Assembly: GCF_006345805.1 (NCBI RefSeq)
Contig: NW_021827038.1
Coordinates: 1 to 11,143, forward strand
DNA length: 11,143 nucleotides
Source: Octopus sinensis
Lineage: Eukaryota
Direction of reading: 5' to 3'
A program made the position numbers and the translations under genes. Position 1 is the stretch's first letter. Every line of letters begins with the position of its first letter. Of the stretch, positions 1 to 11,143 are shown piece by piece. Below the pieces are notes generated by a model. That model was not told the origin of the DNA. It was given only the letters and a program-made list of their open reading frames with translations, and ran no database searches.

Positions 1-634
1 TATCCTCTTCCTGCATTAAATTTCTATCTAGATAAGATCTCGACGATCCGACGCGGGTTGTCCAAGTCCACGTTGGCACGTTCGGATGCTCGAGTCGGAA
101 CCTGTCAGACAAATGGAAACGTCTCAGTAGGTCTTTGAGGCCTCACTTACACCCCCTTCTATTCCTATCCATTCCCACATAATCTAGATGCGTGTCCAAG
201 GGTAGCGTTCCAATCCCCTACTAACAGTAAAGGTCTAGACGTACCCAGGAAAACCTCTAGACGTCTGAAGAAATCCGCCCGACCCGTTAAGGACGGTGCA
301 TAAATGCCATCAGACGGAATGCACACCCATTTCTGCCATCCACGTCCAAGACAACCAGCCTACCCTCCGCAGGGTCTAGGAATATTGTTCTTACTTTTAC
401 ATTTAGACTCTTTCGAAAAAGCACCGCGGTAACTCCACACCCATGTTCGGCAGACAGGGAGAAAAATAAATGTCAAATTGATCGCCAAACATGGACTCGA
501 GAGCCCGCGGCTGCTGAGTCTGTTTCACTGATAGCTACTATATCCACGTTCAGTGACTTGATGTCGTTTAGAAGGTAACCTTGCTTCCAAGCCGACGCCA
601 AGCCACGCTCATTCACACAACCTAATTTAAGCAT
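1..634 (-). pseudogene. E1 ORF2 N-terminus: apurinic-like (APE) endonuclease domain, frameshifted, truncated by the window edge
   Basis: ATG at 634-632 reads MLKLGCVNERGLASAWKQGYLLNDIKSLNVDIVAISET. Across frameshifts it continues to LLLVGDWNA and TWTWTTRVGSSRSYLDR, which carry the catalytic N, E, D/N and D motifs of L1-type EN. It is collinear with 5203-5830. Confidence 0.9.
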
Positions 635-700
635 AATTGACGTTTACGAAAATTGTGTTTCACACACTACATTGGAAGAGACAAGAGGCAAGAGGGAAGG

Positions 701-2562
701 TCACTTACTCATTTCGAAAGTTTCATTTTTTTCTTCTTCTTTTGTAGTGTCTTTGATGAGGTGTTTGTATAGTTTTTTGGAGAGGTAACGTTGAAACCTG
801 CCTACCGCATTTGGAAATATTGTTTTCAGTGTATAGTTTTGTGTTTGTGTTATGGTACAATTTTATGTGCTTCGGTGGTGTGTGGTGGCGGATGATTGTT
901 TGTCATAAAGTCATCTTCACAGATGTCCGTGTTGGATGCAATGTAATCCATTAATTTTTTATTGCCTGTGTCTATTGCAGTTAGTGTGTGTGTTTTGGTT
1001 TTGCGGGGTCATGATTTGTTGATTGTCTAGGGGGATGCTGTCCGGAGTTAAATATCTCCCTGCTTTACTCCTTGTTTGGTGGGTTTTTGATCTTTTCCTT
1101 TTACCCCTGTGGCTATTTGCCGTTCCGTCGAACTTTCGTCGTCCGACGTATCAGAAGGGGGTAAAGGCAAAGCATTTGCGTTACTATGTATGCTTGCAGA
1201 AATTGTTGATGTTTGTGCGGTTGTTTGTGTTGTTGTGGTGTTAGGGGTAGAATTTGTCTTCTCGTCACTGTTTCTGTCTTTTTAATTGTCGTCCTCGGTG
1301 TTGGGTTGGTCTATCTTTTGGTTCAGTATGTTGAATTGGTTGCGACGTCAACGGTGATGTGTTGGTACTGCTTCTTTTCTTGGTGATGTTGTTGGGGTTT
1401 GTTTGTTGTTTTTCTTGGCATTGAGTGTGTTGGTGTTGGTGTTGGCAACAAGGGTTTTTTATTTGTTTTCTGATTTGTTCTTTCTTGTTTTTCTGTGCCA
1501 GAGTGCACTTGGCAATTAAATGTTCTGGGCTGCCACATTTGTAGCATCTAGGCTTTTTGCCTTCTGCTACAACATATAGGCTTTGCCCATTTTCTAAGTG
1601 GATCCTATCAGGTAAGTTCTCGATAGAGGACCCCTCAATCTGGATGGTCACTACTATTGTTTTACCACCCCAACTGTCGTTTTTGTACGCGGCGGTTTCT
1701 AATATATTTATCTTTTTCAAATGGTAATAGATTGCCCCTGTTATCCATTTGTTAGGTATCTCGGGGGGTACATTTTTAATGCTAATTCTGCTCACTCTCT
1801 GGCCTTTGTAATATGGTACCATGATGATATCATCATTTTCCAAAGACTCTGTAGAGTGAACTTTTGCCACTTCCTGGTTAGAGAAGCGGACCACCACTGT
1901 ATTAAACTGGGAACCCCAGTTTATATATTCTTTTTTTTTAATTATGCTTTTTAAACACTTTTCTATGTCCGTCTTTGTATCTGTTCATTTTGCTTTTGTT
2001 TTTTCTTATAATTTATATATAATTGTCTTATTTTTTATTTGTTCCTTTATGGTTGAGGTGTATGCAGCACTAAATCCTGCCCTTGTGTTGTAAAGAGTGC
2101 TCTCGTTTCTATTAACTCTTCATTCAAATTTACTATTTCTTTTTTCTGACGCAGAGTGTCAGCGAAATTTACTGGTGTTGTTGATTCTTTTATATTAACA
2201 TCTTCACTATTAGATAGTAAGATATTTATTTCATATCTATTATTGTTCTTGTTGTTGTTTTTGTTAATAGTATTCGCGTGAGTTTCATTTTTATCATTTA
2301 TGTTGGTCGTGGTGATGGTGGTGGTGGTGGAGGTGGTGCTGGTAGCAGTAGTAGTCTCGTTGTTGTTGTTGTTGTTGTTAGTGGTGGTGGTGGTGGTGGT
2401 GACAGGGCTGTTACCGCAAGTGGTTGCAGCGTTCACTACCACGTCATTCAGGTTTGCACTTTGCGTGCATAAGATCTTTTTTTCTCCTAGCGTTTCCAGA
2501 CTAGGAAAATGCTGATCCATAAAGGAACACGACCAGCGTTCTACAATAACATTTCTCGACAT
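701..2562 (-). pseudogene. E1 ORF1 (gag-like RNA-binding protein: RRM-like region, CCHC zinc knuckle, low-complexity linker, conserved C-terminal domain), disrupted
   Basis: Pieces are ORF 2047-2562 (poly-Thr/Asn N-terminus), ORF 1265-1897 (RVSRISIKNVPPEI...W; knuckle CYKCGSPEHLIAKC = CX2CX4HX4C at 1546-1505), and downstream frames (LPLPPSD, LTAIDTGNKKLMDYI, YTLKTIFPNAVGRFQRYLSKKLY, TFEMSK*) ending at TGA 703-701. It has several in-frame stops and frameshifts. The true start could be the second ATG at 2520. Confidence 0.85.
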
Positions 2563-2765
2563 TTTTTAATGTCGAGAAGAAATATACACAAATTAAATAG
2601 AGTTGAAACTGCCACTAGGGGCGAATTCCTCCCTTGGAAAAGCACTCAAGCGAAAGTTGGGTGCCTTACACACCTTATTTACAAAAATGTACACAAAATA
2701 TGGGCTATAAATAGACAAAATAAACGATTACCTTCGGAGCCGAGGTGATAGCACGTCCGTAGATG

Positions 2766-2851
2766 GATAGATAGATAGATAGATAGATAGATAGGTAGAT
2801 AGATAGATAGATAGATAGGTAGGTAGGTAGGTAGGTAGGTACGTAGGTAGG

Positions 2852-2914
<63 letters not shown>

Positions 2915-2935
2915 GTAGGTAGGTAGGTATGTAGG

Positions 2936-2974
<39 letters not shown>

Positions 2975-3002
2975 GTAGGTAGGTAGGTAGGTAGGTAGGT
3001 AG

Positions 3003-3057
<55 letters not shown>

Positions 3058-3090
3058 GTAGGTAGGTAGGTAGGTAGGTAGGTAGGTAGG

Positions 3091-3125
<35 letters not shown>

Positions 3126-3138
3126 GTAGGTAGGTAGG

Positions 3139-3185
<47 letters not shown>

Positions 3186-3198
3186 GTAGGTAGGTAGG

Positions 3199-3229
<31 letters not shown>

Positions 3230-3258
3230 GTAGGTAGGTAGGTAGGTAGATAGATAGG

Positions 3259-3312
<54 letters not shown>
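2766..3312 (+). repeat. (GATA)n/(GGTA)n compound tetranucleotide microsatellite; reads (TATC)n on the E1 sense strand and forms the E1 5' flank
   Basis: Alternating blocks of GATA and GGTA units read directly, with rare CGTA/TGTA variants. Confidence 0.99.
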
Positions 3313-3316
3313 TATT

Positions 3317-3635
3317 GGCGCAAGAGTTCTAGTTTGCTTCCCAACCACATGGTTCTGGATTTAGTCCCACACCATGGCTCCTTGGCTAAGTGTCTTCGAC
3401 CAAAGCCTTGTGAGTGGATTTGGTAAAAAGAAATTGAAAAAAAGCACGTTTGCGTTTATGTTTGTCTCCCCTTACCCTTTCACAACTGGTATTAGTGTGT
3501 TTAAGTCTTCGTAACTTGGCGGTTCAGCAAAAAGAACCAACAGAATAAATACGAGGCTTTTAGGGGGGGGGGGAGCACTGGGTTTGATTCGTCCGACTGA
3601 AATTCAAGGCAGTGTCCGAGCATGGCCGCAGTTTG
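3317..3635 (+). mobile_element. Degenerate tRNA-derived SINE, same family as 9503-9947 and 10427-10693
   Basis: Shares GGCGCA.GAGT, CCAACCACATGGTTC, CTTGG..AAGTGTCTTC, GACCAAAGCCTTGTGAGTGGATTTGGTA and GCATGGCCGCAGT with the other copies. The A box is deleted, the B box is decayed and there are internal deletions. Confidence 0.85.
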
Positions 3636-3637
3636 AT

Positions 3638-3698
3638 GGAGGGGAGGGGAGAGAGAGAGGGAGAAAGAGAGAGAGAGGGAGAGAGAGAGAGAGAGAGA
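3638..3698 (+). repeat. (GA)n-rich microsatellite
   Basis: Direct reading. Confidence 0.95.
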
Positions 3699-3772
3699 CT
3701 GACAGACAAAGCGACAGATATCTTCGTAAGTATCCTTTCCCGTATAAGCATCAGGGGCTGAAATACTGGAAG

Positions 3773-3843
3773 ATCTATCTATCTATTTATCTACCTACCT
3801 ACCTACCTACCTACATACCTACCTACCTACCTATCCCTCTATA

Positions 3844-3879
<36 letters not shown>

Positions 3880-3952
3880 AATCTATCTACCTACCTACCT
3901 ACCTACCTATCCCTCTATCTATCTACCTACCTACCTATCTATCTATCTATCT
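3773..3952 (+). repeat. (TATC)n/(TACC)n compound microsatellite; 5' flank of E2
   Basis: TATC and TACC blocks read directly. The variant CTATCCCTCT recurs at 3831 and 3907. Confidence 0.98.
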
Positions 3953-5175
3953 TTCCTCAACGAAAGTTTAGCAAAACGTTTTTCCACATTGGAGCTGCAT
4001 TCGGACGACTTGGTAATGATACCAGTCTATTTAAACAAAAGGGTCACGAAAGTCCAAATAAAAAACATACCATTTGATGTCGAAACACAATGGTTGGTCT
4101 CTGCCATCTGCTTTGAAATGTCAGAGACAATGTCAGAGACAAACATCCTGGAAATCGCGGTTCTAGGAGAGAAAGACTATGTGGGCAAATCATCGAATTC
4201 CTGCTTCAATGGATGAAGCAGCAAGAGAGAAGATACCCACCGCTATAGACTGCCAGGAGGCTACAAATCTATATAGTGGTAGAGGGCAGGCGACCACGCT
4301 GCTATTTGTGTGGAAGCGAAACACACTTGAAAAAGACGTGCCCAACCATGCACACAACAGAGCAACAACAACAACCACTACCACAACCAAAGCACTCCGG
4401 AAAAAAAGCTCTACTACCCACACCACCATCAACACAGAAGACGACAAGAGAAGCACACCAAGCTAATCCGTCATCAACCAAAAACCACTCAACACCTGGA
4501 AAAATACCAACACCACCATCAACAGCAAAACCCAAAGGAACAGAAAAACAAAGAAAACACACACAAACTGATCCCCCATCCCTTATACCGCACTCAACAC
4601 ACACAAACACTCAACAACCAACAACAACGAAAACAACAACACAACCACTTACACAGACATACATAGAAGCCCACAACATACCCCTACCCCCTTCTGATTC
4701 CTCAGAAATTTCGTCGGAAGACGAAACCAGTGAGGAATGGCAAATAGCTACAAAAAGAAGGAAAATAAAGAGCAGAAACACAACCAAACCAAATGCAAAC
4801 ACGAACAAAGCAGGGGGAAATACATCTCCCGAAGACATTTCAAAACCCAACGCAAACAACAGCCACACCAACACCACAAAAACATATACAGCAAACATGC
4901 TCACAGCCATAGACACCAAAAACACAAATTTGATGGAATACATCCAATCAAAAACAAACATAACAGAAGATGACATAAAAACAATCACCCATACACAACA
5001 CCACCAGACCACATCAAAATATTACACATCTCCAAAAGTCTGCACCACACACTCAAAGGCATTTTCCCCAGTGCGGTTGGTAAATGCCAAAAATATCTCA
5101 CAAAGAAACTGTACTGGGATCTTCTCGAGGACAAACCAACGGAGGAGAAAGCAAAAACTTTCGAGCAGTAAGTAA
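3953..5175 (+). pseudogene. E2 ORF1 remnant (N-terminus missing; second RRM-like region, CCHC knuckle, T/Q/P/N-rich linker, conserved C-terminal domain)
   Basis: FLNESLAKRFSTLELHSDDLVMIPVYLNKRVTKVQIKNIP aligns with E1 FSNQEVAKVHSTESLENDDIIMVPYYKGQRVSRISIKNVP. The knuckle CYLCGSETHLKKTC is at 4300-4341. There are frameshifts near 4190-4270 and 5044. It ends SK* like E1. Confidence 0.87.
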
Positions 5176-5202
5176 CCCTCTGTATTCTAATTCATTAGAA
5201 CT

Positions 5203-8200
5203 ATGATCAAGATTGGTTGTGTAAATGCGCGTGGCTTGGGTCCCCTTGGAAACAAGGGTACCTCTTAAATGACATAAAGTCACATAAGTTAGAAATCATA
5301 GCCATAAGCGAGACCAGACTCCACAATCCGCGGGCCCTAAAGACCATGTTTGGCGGACAGTTCAACATTTATTTTTCCCCCTGTCTGCCGAGAATGGGCG
5401 GTAGTGGCACCGCGGTACTTTTACACAAGTGTCTGGATCTCAATGTAAGGACAATATTCATAGACCCGGAGGGTAGACTGGTCGTCCTGGATGTCGACGG
5501 CAGCAATGGGTGCGCTTTTCGACTCGTATCAGTTTACGCACCGCCCTTAACAGGTCGGGCGGATTTCTTTCAACGTCTAGAAGTTTTCTTGGGAACGTCT
5601 CGTCCTTTACTCTTAGTGGGGGATTGGAATGCTACCTTGGACACGCATGTAGACTACGTGGGTAGAGATAGGAATAGACGGGGATGCAAATGCCTCAGAG
5701 ACCTGCTCAGACGCTTTCAACTGTCTGACAGGTTCCGACTAGACCACCCGAATGCGCCAACGTGGACATGGAGCAACCGCATCGGGTCGTCGAGATCGTA
5801 TCTAGATAGGATCCTGTGTAGGACAGTAGTAGATAGAGATAGCATAGGATGTCCACAATTCACATAGTCAGCTACACGGATCACAAACTTGTGACATGTA
5901 CGCTAGACTTAGGTAAGACACTTAGGCAGGGTCCCGGATACTGGAAACAACGCGTCTTTCCCATCGAGACAAGTTTTCAGAGACCGGATTAGCACACTAG
6001 TAAAGAGGGCTTTGACGGGAGCCATCATCAACAACAAATGGTGGTTGCCCTCAAGAGAGCAGTAAAAGCAGAAGCGATTAGGTACAGCAAAGCACTAGCC
6101 ATACATAGAAATAGAGTAGAGGTGAGCTAGTAAGAAGCTAGAAGAGGCAATTAGAAGCGGCCATCGCATCCGACGTTTTGGCGGCGAGGTTGGCCCTCGA
6201 CCAACACTTCAACGCCAAACACGAAGGATGTGCTGTCAGAGTTAGGATGCGTGCTCTAAGGAACGAAGGTGTTGGAGCCGCGAGAGAGAGGGCCGGGTGG
6301 CAGAGGCGCAACAGGGCAACAAAGCCACCATTCGGTCACTGGTAGATGAACAGGGGCGCGAATTGCTCGAGCCAAGTAAAATGTGTGAGGCCTTTCAGCA
6401 GCATTTGCCCGGACTTTCGGAACGAGTGGAGGGCAAGAACGTAGGGTGGACTTCAGTGCCTACCTACATAGCCTACCACGACTCTCGACAAGAAAGGCAG
6501 GGTGCTGCGAAGGTGCCATCACGGGGGCGGAAGTGCGGGAAGCGATGGCAGAATGCTCGAGGGACAAATCACCGGGTTTGGATGGTCTACCCTACGAGCT
6601 TTACAATTGTATGCCAGACTTGTTTGGAGATCTTGGCGGCGGTGTACTGCAACTGGCAGCAAAACGGGAGCATTCCTGGTTTTGTGAGCCGAGGAGCCGT
6701 AACACGTCTGAAGAAGATCTAAACAAGGGAAATGTAATAGATAACTTAGGCCCATCACTCTGCTTAATGCAGACTTGAAAATTTTGGCCAAGGTGCTAGC
6801 CAAGAGGTTGGCGCTTGTCATCGAGAAAACTGGTCGACAAGGCGCAACATGCGCCGTGCCAGGCCGGACCATCCATGACAACCTCCATCTGATGCGCTAC
6901 ATCATAGACAGGGTAGTTAACGAACCTGGCATGGGTGGGGCCCTGATCAACTTGGATCAATCGAAAAGCCTTTGATAGGGTAGACCATCGATACTTGGAG
7001 GCAGTCCTGAGAGCGGCTGGTTTCGGTCCCGTCTTCCGCGGTGGATAGCTGCCTTGTACAGAGGCATCCGTTCGGTAATTCGCGTAAATGGACATCTATC
7101 GAGACCTTTCGACATTGCACGTTCGGTCCGTCAGGGATGCCCCTCTCGGCGCTTCTATACGTATGACTCTTGAGCCACTACTGCGGAAGCTGGCGACTCT
7201 AAGGGGCATCCGCGAGAGAATTGGGATGCGGGACGAGCGTGTCTGCATACGCGGACGACCGTCACCGTCATAGTGTCTAGCCACGAGCACATCGAGCTGG
7301 TCGGCGGAGACACTGAAAAACTACGAAGCGGTGACAGGAGCGAATCAAACCGGGAAAAGTCAGTGGGCTTGCGACTAGGCACTGGAGAAGCAAGCCCATG
7401 CCGTCCACCAGCGCCTCCGTCGTGGGACGCTGGACCGACGGCCCGGTTGAGTTGCTCGGGGTCTGGTTCGGTCCGGACCTCCAAGTGGAGAAAACTGGAA
7501 CGAGATAACGAGTAGGGTGGTCACTCTCGCCCGGCAATGGGCCGACCGAGAGAAACTGTCCCTAAAAGGTCGAGGGACGGTGGCGAACACGTACATCGCG
7601 TCCGTCATCTACTACCGCCTGACTGTCGTACCTTGTCCCGACCCTACCATCACCAAACTACAACGCATCCTCTTTCGCTTCTTGTGGAAAGGATGCGTCC
7701 CGATGGTCAGGCGATCCATTTGCTGTCAACACCGTTAAAAGGAGGGCTGGGCATGCCGTGGTTGATGATGCGCAGACACGCGCTGAGACTGCGACATCTC
7801 TGGCTCTATGTAGACGACGGTGAACAGGTGTGGTCGCCGTTTGTGAGGCACGCTTTCCCGCAGCTCGTCTCCATGACCGAACTGCAGTCGTGGATCAAAA
7901 AGAGGCCGAGGAAGGGCGAATGGCACCGCGAGTGTCGCGTGCTCTCAAGCAACTCTGCCGTCCTGGGTCGACCTTAGTGACTTCAACACAACCAAAGCAT
8001 TCTATAGGGGTTTAGTGGAGGGGAGGTACGACGACGAGCTCGGGGGCGAACCTGGACGTCGACGAGGAGTACCTGACCCGCCTGTTCGGGACGACTTTCG
8101 GGCCAGGGCCCATGGACAACTTCCAGAGATCCCTGGCCTGGCAGTGCTACCGAGAAGCGCTACCCGTTCGGGATAAGCTCTACAGACACGGCTCGAGAAA

Positions 8201-8630
8201 CACGGGGCCGACCTGCCCGAGATGCGGTCAGAGTGACGAAACCGTTCTGCACGCACTCGTTCAGTGTCCAACAATTTCCGACCTGTGGGCTTATGCGAAC
8301 AACTGCTGTCACGTGTGGGACGAGTCGGTTTATCAGCTGAGTCTATCGTCAATATTGTCACGCCTCCTTCCTTCAAACGGGAAGGAAGAGCTATTTTCAT
8401 CATCTTGTGGCTATGGCGGAAAGAATGTATCTGGTGGACGCGTCTGAAAGGATTGGAGACAAACACTTTCCTCTCTGGTCAATCTCTCATCAACTTCTTC
8501 AAGTACCACTTGAAAAGGAAAGTGAGAGTAGAGAGGCAAGTTTGTCTAGCGAATGTTTTAAAAAAGATGGGTGAATGTAGCAAGAATGGCACGTATGAAT
8601 GACGAAGCCACCTTGAGCATAGTCCTATGA
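5203..8630 (+). pseudogene. E2 ORF2: APE endonuclease, reverse transcriptase and C-terminal zinc finger; frameshifted as assembled, possibly intact in vivo
   Basis: Start MIKIGCVNARGL (ATG 5203). EN motifs: ISETR, VYAP, GDWN, SYLDRI, YTDH. RT motifs: KSPGLDGLPYELY, RPITLLNADLKILAKVLAKRL, LINLDQSKAFDRVDH, VRQGCPLS, YADD at 7248-7259, LLGVWFG. Also GGLGMP and the zinc finger CPRCGQSDETVLHALVQC. Reconstructed end is ...RWVNVARMARMNDEATLSIVL* (TGA 8628-8630). Confidence 0.93.
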
Positions 8631-9001
8631 AACCAGAATCGAAAACAGAGAGTTGCTATTTGCAAAAAAAAAAAAAAAAAAAGAAATATAAAATGTGACT
8701 TCATTGACCGAGGTCTTTTCCGTAGGCTTTTTTCACGGGTAAACCTCACCTGTCCTCCCCTTTACACTTCATATTGAATTTCTGTGATAACGATCCCTTG
8801 ATCAATTTTTTTTTCCCCTCTCCCCCTTTTTTTTTTTTTTTTTTAACCCCCCCTTTTTTGTCCTCTTTCTCTCTTTTACGATCCCTTTTGATTCGAAACT
8901 CCCTTCTTTTTTTTTTTTTTTTTTTTTAAACCTTCAAAAGAAAAGCTCTACCTTGTAATTTGTTCTATCTGTGTGCAGCCCTGTTGGCTAATAAAGAAAC
9001 A
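8631..9001 (+). other. E2 3' UTR with an internal A19 run, poly(T)/poly(C) tracts and a terminal AATAAA
   Basis: Lies between the ORF2 stop and the TATC tract. A run at 8664-8682, long T runs at about 8805-8930, AATAAA at 8990-8995. Confidence 0.75.
8990..8995 (+). terminator. Polyadenylation-signal hexamer at the element's 3' end
   Basis: AATAAA sits 6 nt before the junction with (TATC)n, the usual position in L1/Tx1 3' ends. Confidence 0.6.
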
Positions 9002-9044
9002 TATCTATCTATCTATATCTATCTATCTATCTACCTACCTACCG

Positions 9045-9086
<42 letters not shown>

Positions 9087-9103
9087 ATATCTATCTATCT
9101 ATC
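9002..9103 (+). repeat. (TATC)n microsatellite with a short TACC block; E2 3' flank and E3 5' flank
   Basis: Direct reading. Confidence 0.98.
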
Positions 9104-9335
9104 CCACTACGGACGTGCTGTCACTTCGACTCCGAAGGTATTCGTTTAATTTGACTATTTATAGCCCATATTGTGTACATTTTGTAAATAAGATGTGTAT
9201 GGCACCCAACTTTCGTTGAGTGCTTTTCCAAGGGAGGAATTCGCCCCTAGGGGCAGTTTCAACCCTATTTAATTTGTGTAATTTTCTTCTCGACATTAAA
9301 AAATGTCGAGAAAATGTTATTGTAGACGCTGGTCG
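9104..9335 (+). mobile_element. E3: 5' UTR and first codons of an E1-like Tx1 element, 3' part lost
   Basis: Collinear with the reverse complement of 2531-2765 (CTACGGACGTGCT...CTCGACATTAAAAAATGTCGAGAA...ACGCTGGTCG), about 90% identical by manual count. Confidence 0.92.
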
Positions 9336-9490
9336 ATTACAGCAACCGCAGTGCACAAACTAGTGGTCATCTGCTCGATCTCAGCTTGATGTAAGGCAAA
9401 GTGAATCTCACTGGCATTCGAACAAGGAATGTAAAGATGCATGAACGGTCTGTAAGCATTTGTTCGCCGAAAAAACAAGTCTGCCATTTG
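9336..9490 (-). mobile_element. Old degenerate tRNA-derived SINE of a second family (partial)
   Basis: The minus strand shows an A-box-like TGGCAGA (9486-9480) and a B-box-like GTTCGAATGCC (9423-9413), followed by ACTTTGCCTTACATC...GCACTGCGGTTGCTGTAATCGAC. From memory this resembles an abundant octopus SINE core; not verified by search. Confidence 0.5.
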
Positions 9491-9502
9491 AATTTCATAT
9501 AT

Positions 9503-9744
9503 TACTCTTTCACACTTTTACTTGTTTCAGTCATTTGACTGCGGCCATGCTGCGGCACCGCCTTTAGTCGAGCAACTCGACCCCGGGACTAATTCTCTTT
9601 TGTAAGCCCAGTAATTATTTACCGGTCTCTTTTGCCGAGCCGCTAAGTGACGGGGACATAAACAACAGCATCGGTTGTCAAGCATGCTAGGGGGACAAAC
9701 ACAGACACGCAAACATACACGAACACACACACAACACACACCCA

Positions 9745-9779
<35 letters not shown>

Positions 9780-9947
9780 CGACGGGCTTCTTTCAGTTCC
9801 GCTACACCAAATCCACTCACTCACAAGGCTTTGGTCGGCCCGAGGTCCATAGTAGAAAACACTTGCCCAAGGTGCCACGCAGTGGGACTGAACCCGGGAC
9901 CATGTGGTTGGTAAGCTAGCTACTTACCACACAGCCACTCCTGCGCC
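9503..9947 (-). mobile_element. Near full-length tRNA-derived SINE (octopus-type) with an internal (TA)n(TG)n tract
   Basis: The minus-strand head GGCGCAGGAGTGGCTGTGTGGTAAG...CCCGGGTTCAGTCCCAC has Pol III A and B boxes. The body matches the copies at 3317 and 10427. The tail is GACTGAAACAAGTAAAAGTGTGAAAGAGT. Confidence 0.9.
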
Positions 9948-10017
<70 letters not shown>

Positions 10018-10056
10018 CACACACACACCACACACATATATATATATATATATATA
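9948..10056 (+). repeat. (TA)n/(CA)n compound microsatellite
   Basis: Direct reading. Confidence 0.97.
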
Positions 10057-10356
10057 GTACAAAGGAAGATAGGTGTTAGGGGTGTAACCCACTATGGGAT
10101 AGCATTTATCTAATATACTGTTGGTAAAGTACCCATAGGCTGAAACAGCCGTAAGAAGTGATTTTAATGATTTCAATAATATATATTATGACTTGTATAA
10201 TTTGTATTCTTATCTTATATATTATATGTATTGAATTATAAGATATATATGTATGCTATTGAGGTTCTCATTTTGTTAATGAATAAATAATCCAACATTA
10301 TAATATCCGAAAGGGATGAACAAACTAAATTTGTTTCTCAATTTTATTATTTGAAG

Positions 10357-10357
<1 letters not shown>

Positions 10358-10417
<60 letters not shown>
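10358..10417 (+). repeat. Pure (TA)n microsatellite
   Basis: Direct reading. Confidence 0.98.
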
Positions 10418-10420
<3 letters not shown>

Positions 10421-10426
10421 AATATA

Positions 10427-10693
10427 GGCGCAGGAGTGGAGTGGCGGTGTGTGGTAAGTAGCTTGTTTACCAACCACATGGTTCCGGGTTCAGTCCATTG
10501 CGTGGCACCTTGGGCAAGTGTCTTCTACTATAGCCTCGGGCCGACCAAAGCCTTGTGAGTGGATTTGGTAGACGGAAAACTGAAAGAAGCCTGTCGTATA
10601 TATGTATATATCGCGATGTGTGTGTTTGTGTGTCTGTATTTGTGCCACTAGCATGCTTGACAACCGATGCTGGTGCGGTTTATGTCCCCATCA
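10427..10693 (+). mobile_element. tRNA-derived SINE, 3' part missing
   Basis: High identity to the reverse complement of the first part of the 9503-9947 copy. It has an A box, the B box GGTTCAGTCC and GGATTTGGTAGACGGAAAACTGAAAGAAGCC. The match stops after TTATGTCCCC. Confidence 0.9.
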
Positions 10694-10761
10694 GTGATGG
10701 CTACATGGTCTACTTTGCCAATTTATTTTGAAATGAAACTATAGGATTTTCAATGATATTG

Positions 10762-11143
10762 ATATATATATACATATACATATATATATGCATATACATA
10801 TACAAATGCATACATATGTGCATTCATACATACTTGCATTCATAAATACATACATTCAAGCATGCATACGTACATACATACATACATACAAACATACATA
10901 CATGCGTGCGTGTGTGCATACATACATACATATATACATACATACATACATACATACACACACACACATACATACATAAATACATACACACATACATACA
11001 TACATAGATACATACATACATACATACATACATACATACATGCGTGCGTGTGTGCATACATACCTACATATATACATACATACATACATACATACATACA
11101 TACACACACACACATACATACATACATACATAAATACATACAC
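10762..11143 (+). repeat. (CATA)n-dominated compound microsatellite with (CA)n/(TA)n blocks
   Basis: Direct reading. The marker CATGCGTGCGTGTGTGCATACATAC occurs at 10901 and 11039. Confidence 0.97.

Follow-up and report, generated by a model that had tools for sequence, protein, structure and literature searches.

Sequence-specific long interspersed elements (LINEs) show how a machine made of an endonuclease and a reverse transcriptase (RT) is aimed at chosen DNA, and they are being developed as gene-insertion tools. Among retrotransposons that lack long terminal repeats (non-LTR elements), the recorded microsatellite targets are ACAY (Waldo), AC (Mino), TC (Kibi), TTC (Koshi), TAA (Dong), TTCC/TTTC (crocodilian Tx1), and TG (Togen) (PMC3812793, PMC4494074, PMC4640811). 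Our search of the literature for non-LTR elements that target GATA/TATC in whatever phase, which did not extend to Repbase and Dfam entries, returned nothing relevant. Here, we describe a lineage of LINEs with an apurinic/apyrimidinic endonuclease (APE) that occurs in an 11,143-nucleotide (nt) stretch of Octopus sinensis DNA (contig NW_021827038.1 of the assembly GCF_006345805.1, positions 1-11,143 of the forward strand; hereafter, the window) and in an independent locus of Octopus vulgaris. The window is 11.1 kb of repeat-rich animal DNA with three decayed copies (E1, E2, and E3) of this lineage. We consider it likely that these L1-group LINEs, which form two subfamilies, target (TATC)n.(GATA)n microsatellites for insertion and that they do so in one fixed orientation. 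TATC/GATA is probably a new target motif within the known class of microsatellite-specific APE-type (Tx1-type) LINEs.

Element junctions in the window

All four element junctions in the window fall in the same tetranucleotide repeat, and the sense strand of E1, E2, and E3 always reads TATC in the flanking repeat. Both points had been made in the original prediction for this DNA, and the arrays and homology limits that we determined match the coordinates given there.

E1 (1-2765, minus strand) is the 5' part of a full-length-type LINE copy that is cut off by the window start. It consists of a 203-nt 5' untranslated region (5'UTR; 2563-2765), an open reading frame (ORF) 1 that carries a CCHC knuckle (start codon at 2562-2560), and the beginning of the APE domain in ORF2 (start at about 634), all on the minus strand. 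The 5' flank of E1 is a compound (GATA)n(GGTA)n array of 547 bp (2766-3312), which reads TATC/TACC on the E1 sense strand and which Tandem Repeats Finder places at 2760-3312 (138 units with 95 per cent matches, GATA/GGTA on the plus strand). E3 (9104-9333, plus strand) is a stub comprising the 5'UTR and approximately the first 10 codons of ORF1. E1 (as the reverse complement of 1-2765) and E3 have a common 5' end and are 92 per cent identical (blastn and MAFFT). In the MAFFT alignment, their homology ends no more than 3 nt from the repeat, at ...TATCTATC/CATCTACGGACGTGC and ...TATCTATC/CCACTACGGACGTGC (here and below, a slash within a sequence marks the junction).

E2 (3953-9001, plus strand) is a 5'-truncated copy from a second subfamily. 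It comprises an ORF1 remnant with a CCHC knuckle (3953-5175), an ORF2 with APE, RT, and zf-RVT regions and many frameshifts (ATG at 5203, stop codon at 8600-8602), and a 3'UTR of about 400 nt (8603-9001); frameshifts break E1 and E3 as well. Upstream of E2 lies a (TATC)n/(TACC)n array (3773-3952; TATC/TACC on the plus strand; 45 units according to Tandem Repeats Finder), and the 5' junction at 3953 reads ...TATCTATCT/TTCCTCAACG. Because the E2 frame at 3953 aligns to E1 ORF1 at FSNQEVAKVHSTESLENDD, about 870 nt of 5' sequence are absent relative to E1, in agreement with the earlier claim that E2 is truncated within ORF1 yet adjoins TATC. The 3'UTR terminates without poly(A), and the 3' junction at 9001/9002 reads ...GGCTAATAAAGAAACA/TATCTATC. 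The array that follows, (TATC)n with a short TACC block (9002-9103; TATC on the plus strand; 26 units according to Tandem Repeats Finder), flanks E2 on its 3' side and E3 on its 5' side. In the APE region, the identity between E1 and E2 is only about 80 per cent, and their ORF1s cannot be aligned by blastn; the two copies therefore represent two subfamilies.

The window's other simple-sequence tracts had been said to border no element end. This is correct for the LINE described here, no end of which is touched by the (GA)n tract at 3649-3698, for example, but copies of a short interspersed element (SINE) contain or adjoin the (TA)n, (CA)n, and (GA)n tracts. Three such copies, of the octopus tRNA-derived type with internal (TA)n(TG)n, are found at 3313 to about 3640 (plus strand), about 9497 to 9947 (minus strand), and 10427 to about 10700 (plus strand), the first of which begins right where the GATA array beside E1 ends. 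Within that array, runs of approximately 9-20 GATA units alternate with runs of approximately 4-9 GGTA units roughly eight times. The mixture of TATC and TACC recurs in the window's two other arrays, and mixtures of TATC and TGTC occur in the O. vulgaris locus.

An independent locus in Octopus vulgaris

For an independent sample of the lineage, we built a profile of the ORF1 core from E1, E2, and a relative from Argonauta, and the locus that it led to was fetched blind to its flanks. The profile search returned a single protein, the O. vulgaris 'hypothetical protein' P0127, which was assigned to the E1 family by eye and is about 88 per cent identical over the aligned core. Its locus (L087; 47.5 kb of O. 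vulgaris chromosome OX597828.1, to which the coordinates in this section refer) contains two further copies of the LINE, A and B, on the same strand.

Copy A (5955-8662) is 89 per cent identical in nucleotide sequence to E2, starts inside the APE region, and has an internal deletion; its 5' truncation point differs from that of E2. An (ATCT)n array (5830-5954) lies directly upstream of it, and its 3' junction, GGCTAATAAAGAAACA/TATC, leads into a (TATC)n array (8663-8823). Copy B begins right after this array and extends over about 6.07 kb (8824-14887/9), with nucleotide identities of 89 per cent to E1 and about 81 per cent to E2. Its 3' junction reads ...GGCCACAATAAAAAAGT/TATCTATC (the end can also be written as ...AATAAAAAAGT) and lies at an array that Tandem Repeats Finder places at 14890-15053. 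All four junctions of copies A and B are thus in sense-strand TATC arrays. The original prediction had been of a strand-specific (TATC)n/(GATA)n-targeting lineage, to be checked on the flanks and orientation of further copies. Copies A and B, obtained without regard to their flanks, support it: neither of them has a non-TATC 5' flank or departs from the orientation.

Six other TATC/GATA arrays in the locus carry no element, from which it follows that such arrays pre-exist. Five of these six (within 15925-40269) are oriented like copies A and B. Copy B opens (8824-9270) with a complete 5'UTR-like unit and a stub that starts with ATG, after which come another 5'UTR unit, which is partial, and then the real ORF1. 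These two 5' units are only about 50 per cent alike, and E3 similarly consists of a 5'UTR and a stub of about 10 codons. The stubs of E3 and copy B may reflect a monomer-like 5' structure or, as another possibility, a recurrent stub beside a slightly truncated element. The gene model of P0127 spans 27.5 kb (10001-37526), is built on a LINE ORF1 fragment, and looks like an annotation artefact. Elsewhere in the locus, at about 31400-31450, an interstitial TTAGGG-like run is located beside a hairpin-ended element.

Evidence for targeting of (TATC)n

Across the window and the O. vulgaris locus, five of five elements and eight of eight junctions lie in (TATC)n, with arrays on both sides of E2, copy A, and copy B. 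The orientation of the repeat is the same in every element, the inverted E1 included. At each of the three 3' junctions the repeat opens in one and the same phase (/TATC), and the five 5' junctions vary in phase. The E1/E3/B and E2/A subfamilies, at approximately 80 per cent nucleotide identity, have the same target. Both 5'-truncated copies, E2 (cut in ORF1) and copy A (cut in APE), have TATC at their 5' junctions. Since these two copies are truncated internally, and at different points, yet adjoin TATC, the repeat is not a 3' tail, and we reject the explanation that it is part of the 5'UTR. The arrays are also not a sink for every LINE, because GATA is absent from the 5' end of another, unrelated ORF1 fragment of Tx1-like type in the O. 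vulgaris locus (29.0-30.6 kb, minus strand). Chance co-location is rejected as well: element-free TATC arrays cover a fraction (f) of 2.4 per cent of that locus outside the occupied block, which gives a probability of about 7e-9 (f^5, orientation not counted) that five independent insertions all fall in arrays, and of about 6e-4 (f^2) for the two unbiased copies A and B alone.

Five insertions out of five place the one-sided 95 per cent lower bound of the in-array fraction at about 55 per cent. Elements with >20 per cent of their copies in the target have been regarded as target-specific (PMC4494074), and the Octopus lineage is target-specific in this sense; exclusive use of the target is not supported with n = 5.

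Several observations weigh against targeting, or against a strict form of it. The five elements come from only two loci, and a strict preference cannot be separated from a merely strong one. Neighbouring copies share arrays (E2 with E3, and A with B), so the eight junctions are not independent and the fair count is five insertions. Neither an empty-site allele nor an ortholog was seen, every copy seen is decayed, and no active master copy is documented. The nearest relatives elsewhere, moreover, do not use TATC (see below), and the trait is therefore young or labile.

The alternative that survives best, and which we nevertheless find unlikely, is a passive or weak regional bias, whereby a nearly nonspecific LINE survives or accumulates in microsatellite-rich, low-recombination DNA. 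An account of this kind has been put forward for Waldo-A/B of Drosophila, which lie near CA repeats (PMC3812793). Both of our loci are very rich in simple repeats, and the relative from Argonauta, which would be similarly nonspecific, is flanked by an ordinary target-site duplication of 17 nt beside a (TTTA)n tract. Against such a bias, the junctions are located 0 nt from one single motif despite the presence of (TA)n, (CA)n, (CATA)n, (ATT)n, and (GA)n, and the orientation of all five elements and the phase of all three 3' junctions are constant.

It is very improbable that the element's own RT adds the (TATC)n as a microsatellite tail at the 3' end, with the 5' arrays being the tails of upstream neighbour copies or present by chance. 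Self-made repeat tails are known, as exemplified by the (TAA)n of the I factor and by RTE-type tails. The Octopus elements resemble these in that poly(A) is absent and the repeat follows their ends immediately, two relatives (L086 and L002; see below) end in a different repeat, (ATT)n, with only the 3' side visible, and E3 and copy B are situated just downstream of the 3' array of another copy. However, all five 5' junctions adjoin the repeat, and no 3' end of a LINE lies upstream of the arrays at the 5' ends of E1, E2, and copy A (the sequence at 3699-3772 of the window, upstream of the 5' array of E2, is not one). The same kind of arrays also exists without any element. The 5' junctions of E2 and copy A, two copies truncated at different internal positions, largely refute a tail-only origin.

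Finally, we reject as scarcely credible the notion that the window and the O. vulgaris locus are not independent but arose by segmental duplication, as paralogous descendants of a single ancestral accident. In its favour, both show one order (an E2-like copy, an array, and the 5' end of another copy), and E2 and copy A are 89 per cent identical up to their common 3' junction. Against it, the truncation points of E2 and copy A differ while each adjoins TATC, the identity after the array is only 58 per cent (E3 versus the first 5' unit of copy B) versus 89 per cent before it, and E1 is inverted and has a 547-bp array to itself.

Domain architecture and classification

The predicted proteins are those of an APE-type non-LTR retrotransposon (LINE), with an N-terminal APE followed by an RT in ORF2. 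In searches against Pfam, Exo_endo_phos matched E2 at 5199-5864 (E = 1e-15) and zf-RVT matched it at 8016-8444 (E = 1e-8), whereas RVT_1 gave a weak, sub-threshold match to one E2 fragment (6745-6972; 21.5 bits versus the 29.6-bit cutoff). The putative RT is identified mainly through homology to relatives with precomputed RVT_1 matches and to human L1 ORF2p. The copies also show the pattern expected of LINEs, as E2 and copy A have a common 3' end and different internal starts, and E1, E3, and copy B carry a 5'UTR. Among solved structures, the best matches of the relative P0010 in the PDB are to human LINE-1 ORF2p (E of about 7e-43, versus 1e-22 for R2). Because human L1 ORF2p is the closest structure and the layout is APE-RT-zf-RVT, the predicted proteins support membership in the L1 group.

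Placement within the Tx1 clade is likely, judging by the architecture, the context in the literature, and human L1 ORF2p as the closest of the solved structures. ORF1 of E1 has a zf-CCHC match at the Pfam cutoff (E = 2.7e-4), and there is no Pfam match of ORF1 to Transposase_22. No RRM model of Pfam matched ORF1 either; the ORF1s of E1, E2, and the Argonauta relative do have a conserved region upstream of the knuckle. A Type I ORF1, with an RRM and a CCHC knuckle, is expected of Tx1, as opposed to the Transposase_22 ORF1 of vertebrate L1, and a CCHC knuckle without Transposase_22 follows the Type I pattern, which in animals other than mammals is said to agree with Tx1 (PMC5203782). In surveys of molluscs and of O. 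vulgaris, L1-Tx1 is the L1-group type of LINE, with 13 recently active families in O. vulgaris (PMC10294476, PMC13282606). A tie to Keno-type Tx1 elements failed, as an Rfam search of the window and 24 relative loci found no RNA-gene target.

Proposed mechanism of insertion

If insertion is directed to (TATC)n, as we favour, the predicted APE-type endonuclease of ORF2 would nick the GATA strand of an array. The nick would fall at 5'-GATA/GATA-3', judging from the three 3' junctions and provided that the RNA ends in ...AAACA. The freed 3'-OH would then serve as the primer from which the element RNA, recognized via its conserved non-polyadenylated 3' end (...GCCCTGTGTGGCYAATAAAGAAAY), would be reverse transcribed (target-primed reverse transcription). 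Second-strand joining would be imprecise and often premature, giving rise to the 5' truncations and to the variable repeat phase at the 5' junction; a constant 3' phase with a varying 5' phase is what target-primed reverse transcription is expected to produce. As an array would be left on both sides of each insertion, later insertions would adjoin earlier ones and yield head-to-tail strings such as E2-array-E3 and A-array-B. We infer the specificity of the endonuclease as the cause, the position of the nick, and the role of the 3' end from sequence.

A conserved terminal motif, CTGTGT..GCC(C)TKKTGGCY, accompanied by AATAAA, is found at 3' ends in the window (8957-9001), in the O. vulgaris locus (8618-8662 and 14843-14887), and in the relatives L002, L086, and L003. 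By hand, a possible 4-bp hairpin can be drawn in this motif with apparent compensating changes (AGCC/GGCT versus GGCC/GGCC), which we mention as a suggestion only, and RNAalifold found no consensus structure in the conserved 3' ends.

Relatives and their insertion sites

The closest relatives, in other cephalopods, are 58-68 per cent identical to E2 in amino acid sequence over the conceptual C-terminal region of ORF2. Searches with APE and RT returned only relatives of 56-79 per cent identity (56-67 per cent in the APE search alone, on short contigs). Close relatives have the same non-polyadenylated 3' end, ...GCCCTTGTGGCYAATAAAGAAAY, and what follows it varies among them. In L086 (a Joint Genome Institute [JGI] metagenome contig; 1975-2105), >80 nt of pure (ATT)n come after the 3' end. 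L002 (an ENA contig with high coverage, which probably corresponds to many copies; 3824-3877) ends ...AAAGAAAC GATTATTAC. The 3' end of L085 runs into a CA-rich flank. The copy in L003 (Argonauta hians; 6886-12652) is full-length and nearly intact and has the ordinary 17-nt target-site duplication already mentioned, TATTTTTAAAATTTGTA. Because these ends differ, the use of TATC is a trait of the Octopus lineage and not of the whole group. The (ATT)n beside L086 and L002, visible on the 3' side only, may be either a tail or a target. The ORF1 of the L003 copy encodes 476 amino acids, its ORF2 has one in-frame stop codon, and a second, partial copy of its 3'UTR (12408-12650) lies downstream of the first 3' end (12283).

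We put forward two linked proposals, jointly and tentatively, as possible more than probable. One is that the target has switched repeatedly in a young cephalopod LINE lineage, with (TATC)n as the target in Octopus, a family associated with (ATT)n in another cephalopod source, and ordinary insertion with a target-site duplication in Argonauta. The other is that the Octopus lineage may split, spread, and stabilise GATA microsatellites genome-wide, through the arrays on both sides of each copy and head-to-tail stacking.

More distant relatives (L088-L091, from ENA ERZ21867824), at approximately 45 per cent amino acid identity, have intact ORF2s of 1153-1155 amino acids and are arranged head to tail in tandem arrays, the period of which is about 6.6-6.8 kb; neither a microsatellite nor an Rfam RNA gene was found between their tandem units. 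A cuttlefish copy (L092; Acanthosepion pharaonis) is 62 per cent identical to one of them. In JGI metagenomes, a scan guided by protein sequence yielded only distant relatives (24-41 per cent identity), apparently from other invertebrate hosts, and missed the close ones. A similar scan of GTDB genomes gave no relatives, the exact DNA pattern of the 3' end had 0 matches in IMG/VR, and an exact look-up of ten window ORFs found none of them in the protein collection. P0011, a C-terminal fragment of a LINE ORF2, is deposited as a protein of a Herbaspirillum metagenome-assembled genome and looks like host contamination.

Significance and comparison with known systems

A TATC/GATA target would add to the known microsatellite targets a motif of mixed composition with a clear strand asymmetry. 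The close relatives, apparently at other sites, provide the comparison that is needed to find the residues that set specificity, and if target switching is true, the sister endonucleases would be a natural series in which the reading of a repeat by an APE-type nuclease could be mapped. For octopus genomics, targeted insertion would partly account for the interrupted structure seen in GATA arrays, which are very abundant, and gene models such as that of P0127, which rest on LINE fragments, serve as a warning.

Dong, which targets (TAA)n (R4 clade), and Togen, which targets (TG)n (NeSL-related), are likewise microsatellite-specific non-LTR elements (PMC3812793, PMC4640811), and Dong-R4 elements are abundant in Octopus (PMC13282606). 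Unlike the lineage described here, they have a restriction-like endonuclease instead of APE and a single ORF. Waldo at (ACAY)n and Mino at (AC)n, of the R1 clade in insects, are APE LINEs with microsatellite targets, and that of Waldo is also a mixed tetranucleotide (PMC3812793); they differ from the Octopus lineage in their R1/I group membership, ORF1 type, and target motif. Xenopus Tx1L, Keno, Mutsu, and Dewa are sequence-specific APE LINEs of Tx1, the most likely clade of the Octopus lineage. Their targets, however, are a DNA transposon or small-RNA genes, whereas the octopus copies have no flanking RNA gene according to Rfam.

Kibi and Koshi (Tx1 of teleost fish) and crocodilian Tx1 are, like the octopus elements, microsatellite-specific APE LINEs of the L1 group with the repeat on both sides (PMC4494074, PMC3812793). 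Their hosts differ from the cephalopod host here, and their targets, (TC)n, (TTC)n, (TTCC)n, and (TTTC)n, are polypyrimidine/polypurine, unlike the mixed TATC/GATA. In particular, the octopus flanks are TATC/TACC and not the (TC)n or (TTC)n that characterizes Kibi and Koshi. The likeness to the Kibi/Koshi group is one of layout and target type: the octopus ORF2 has the APE-RT-CCHC layout, and the octopus ORF1 has a zinc knuckle.

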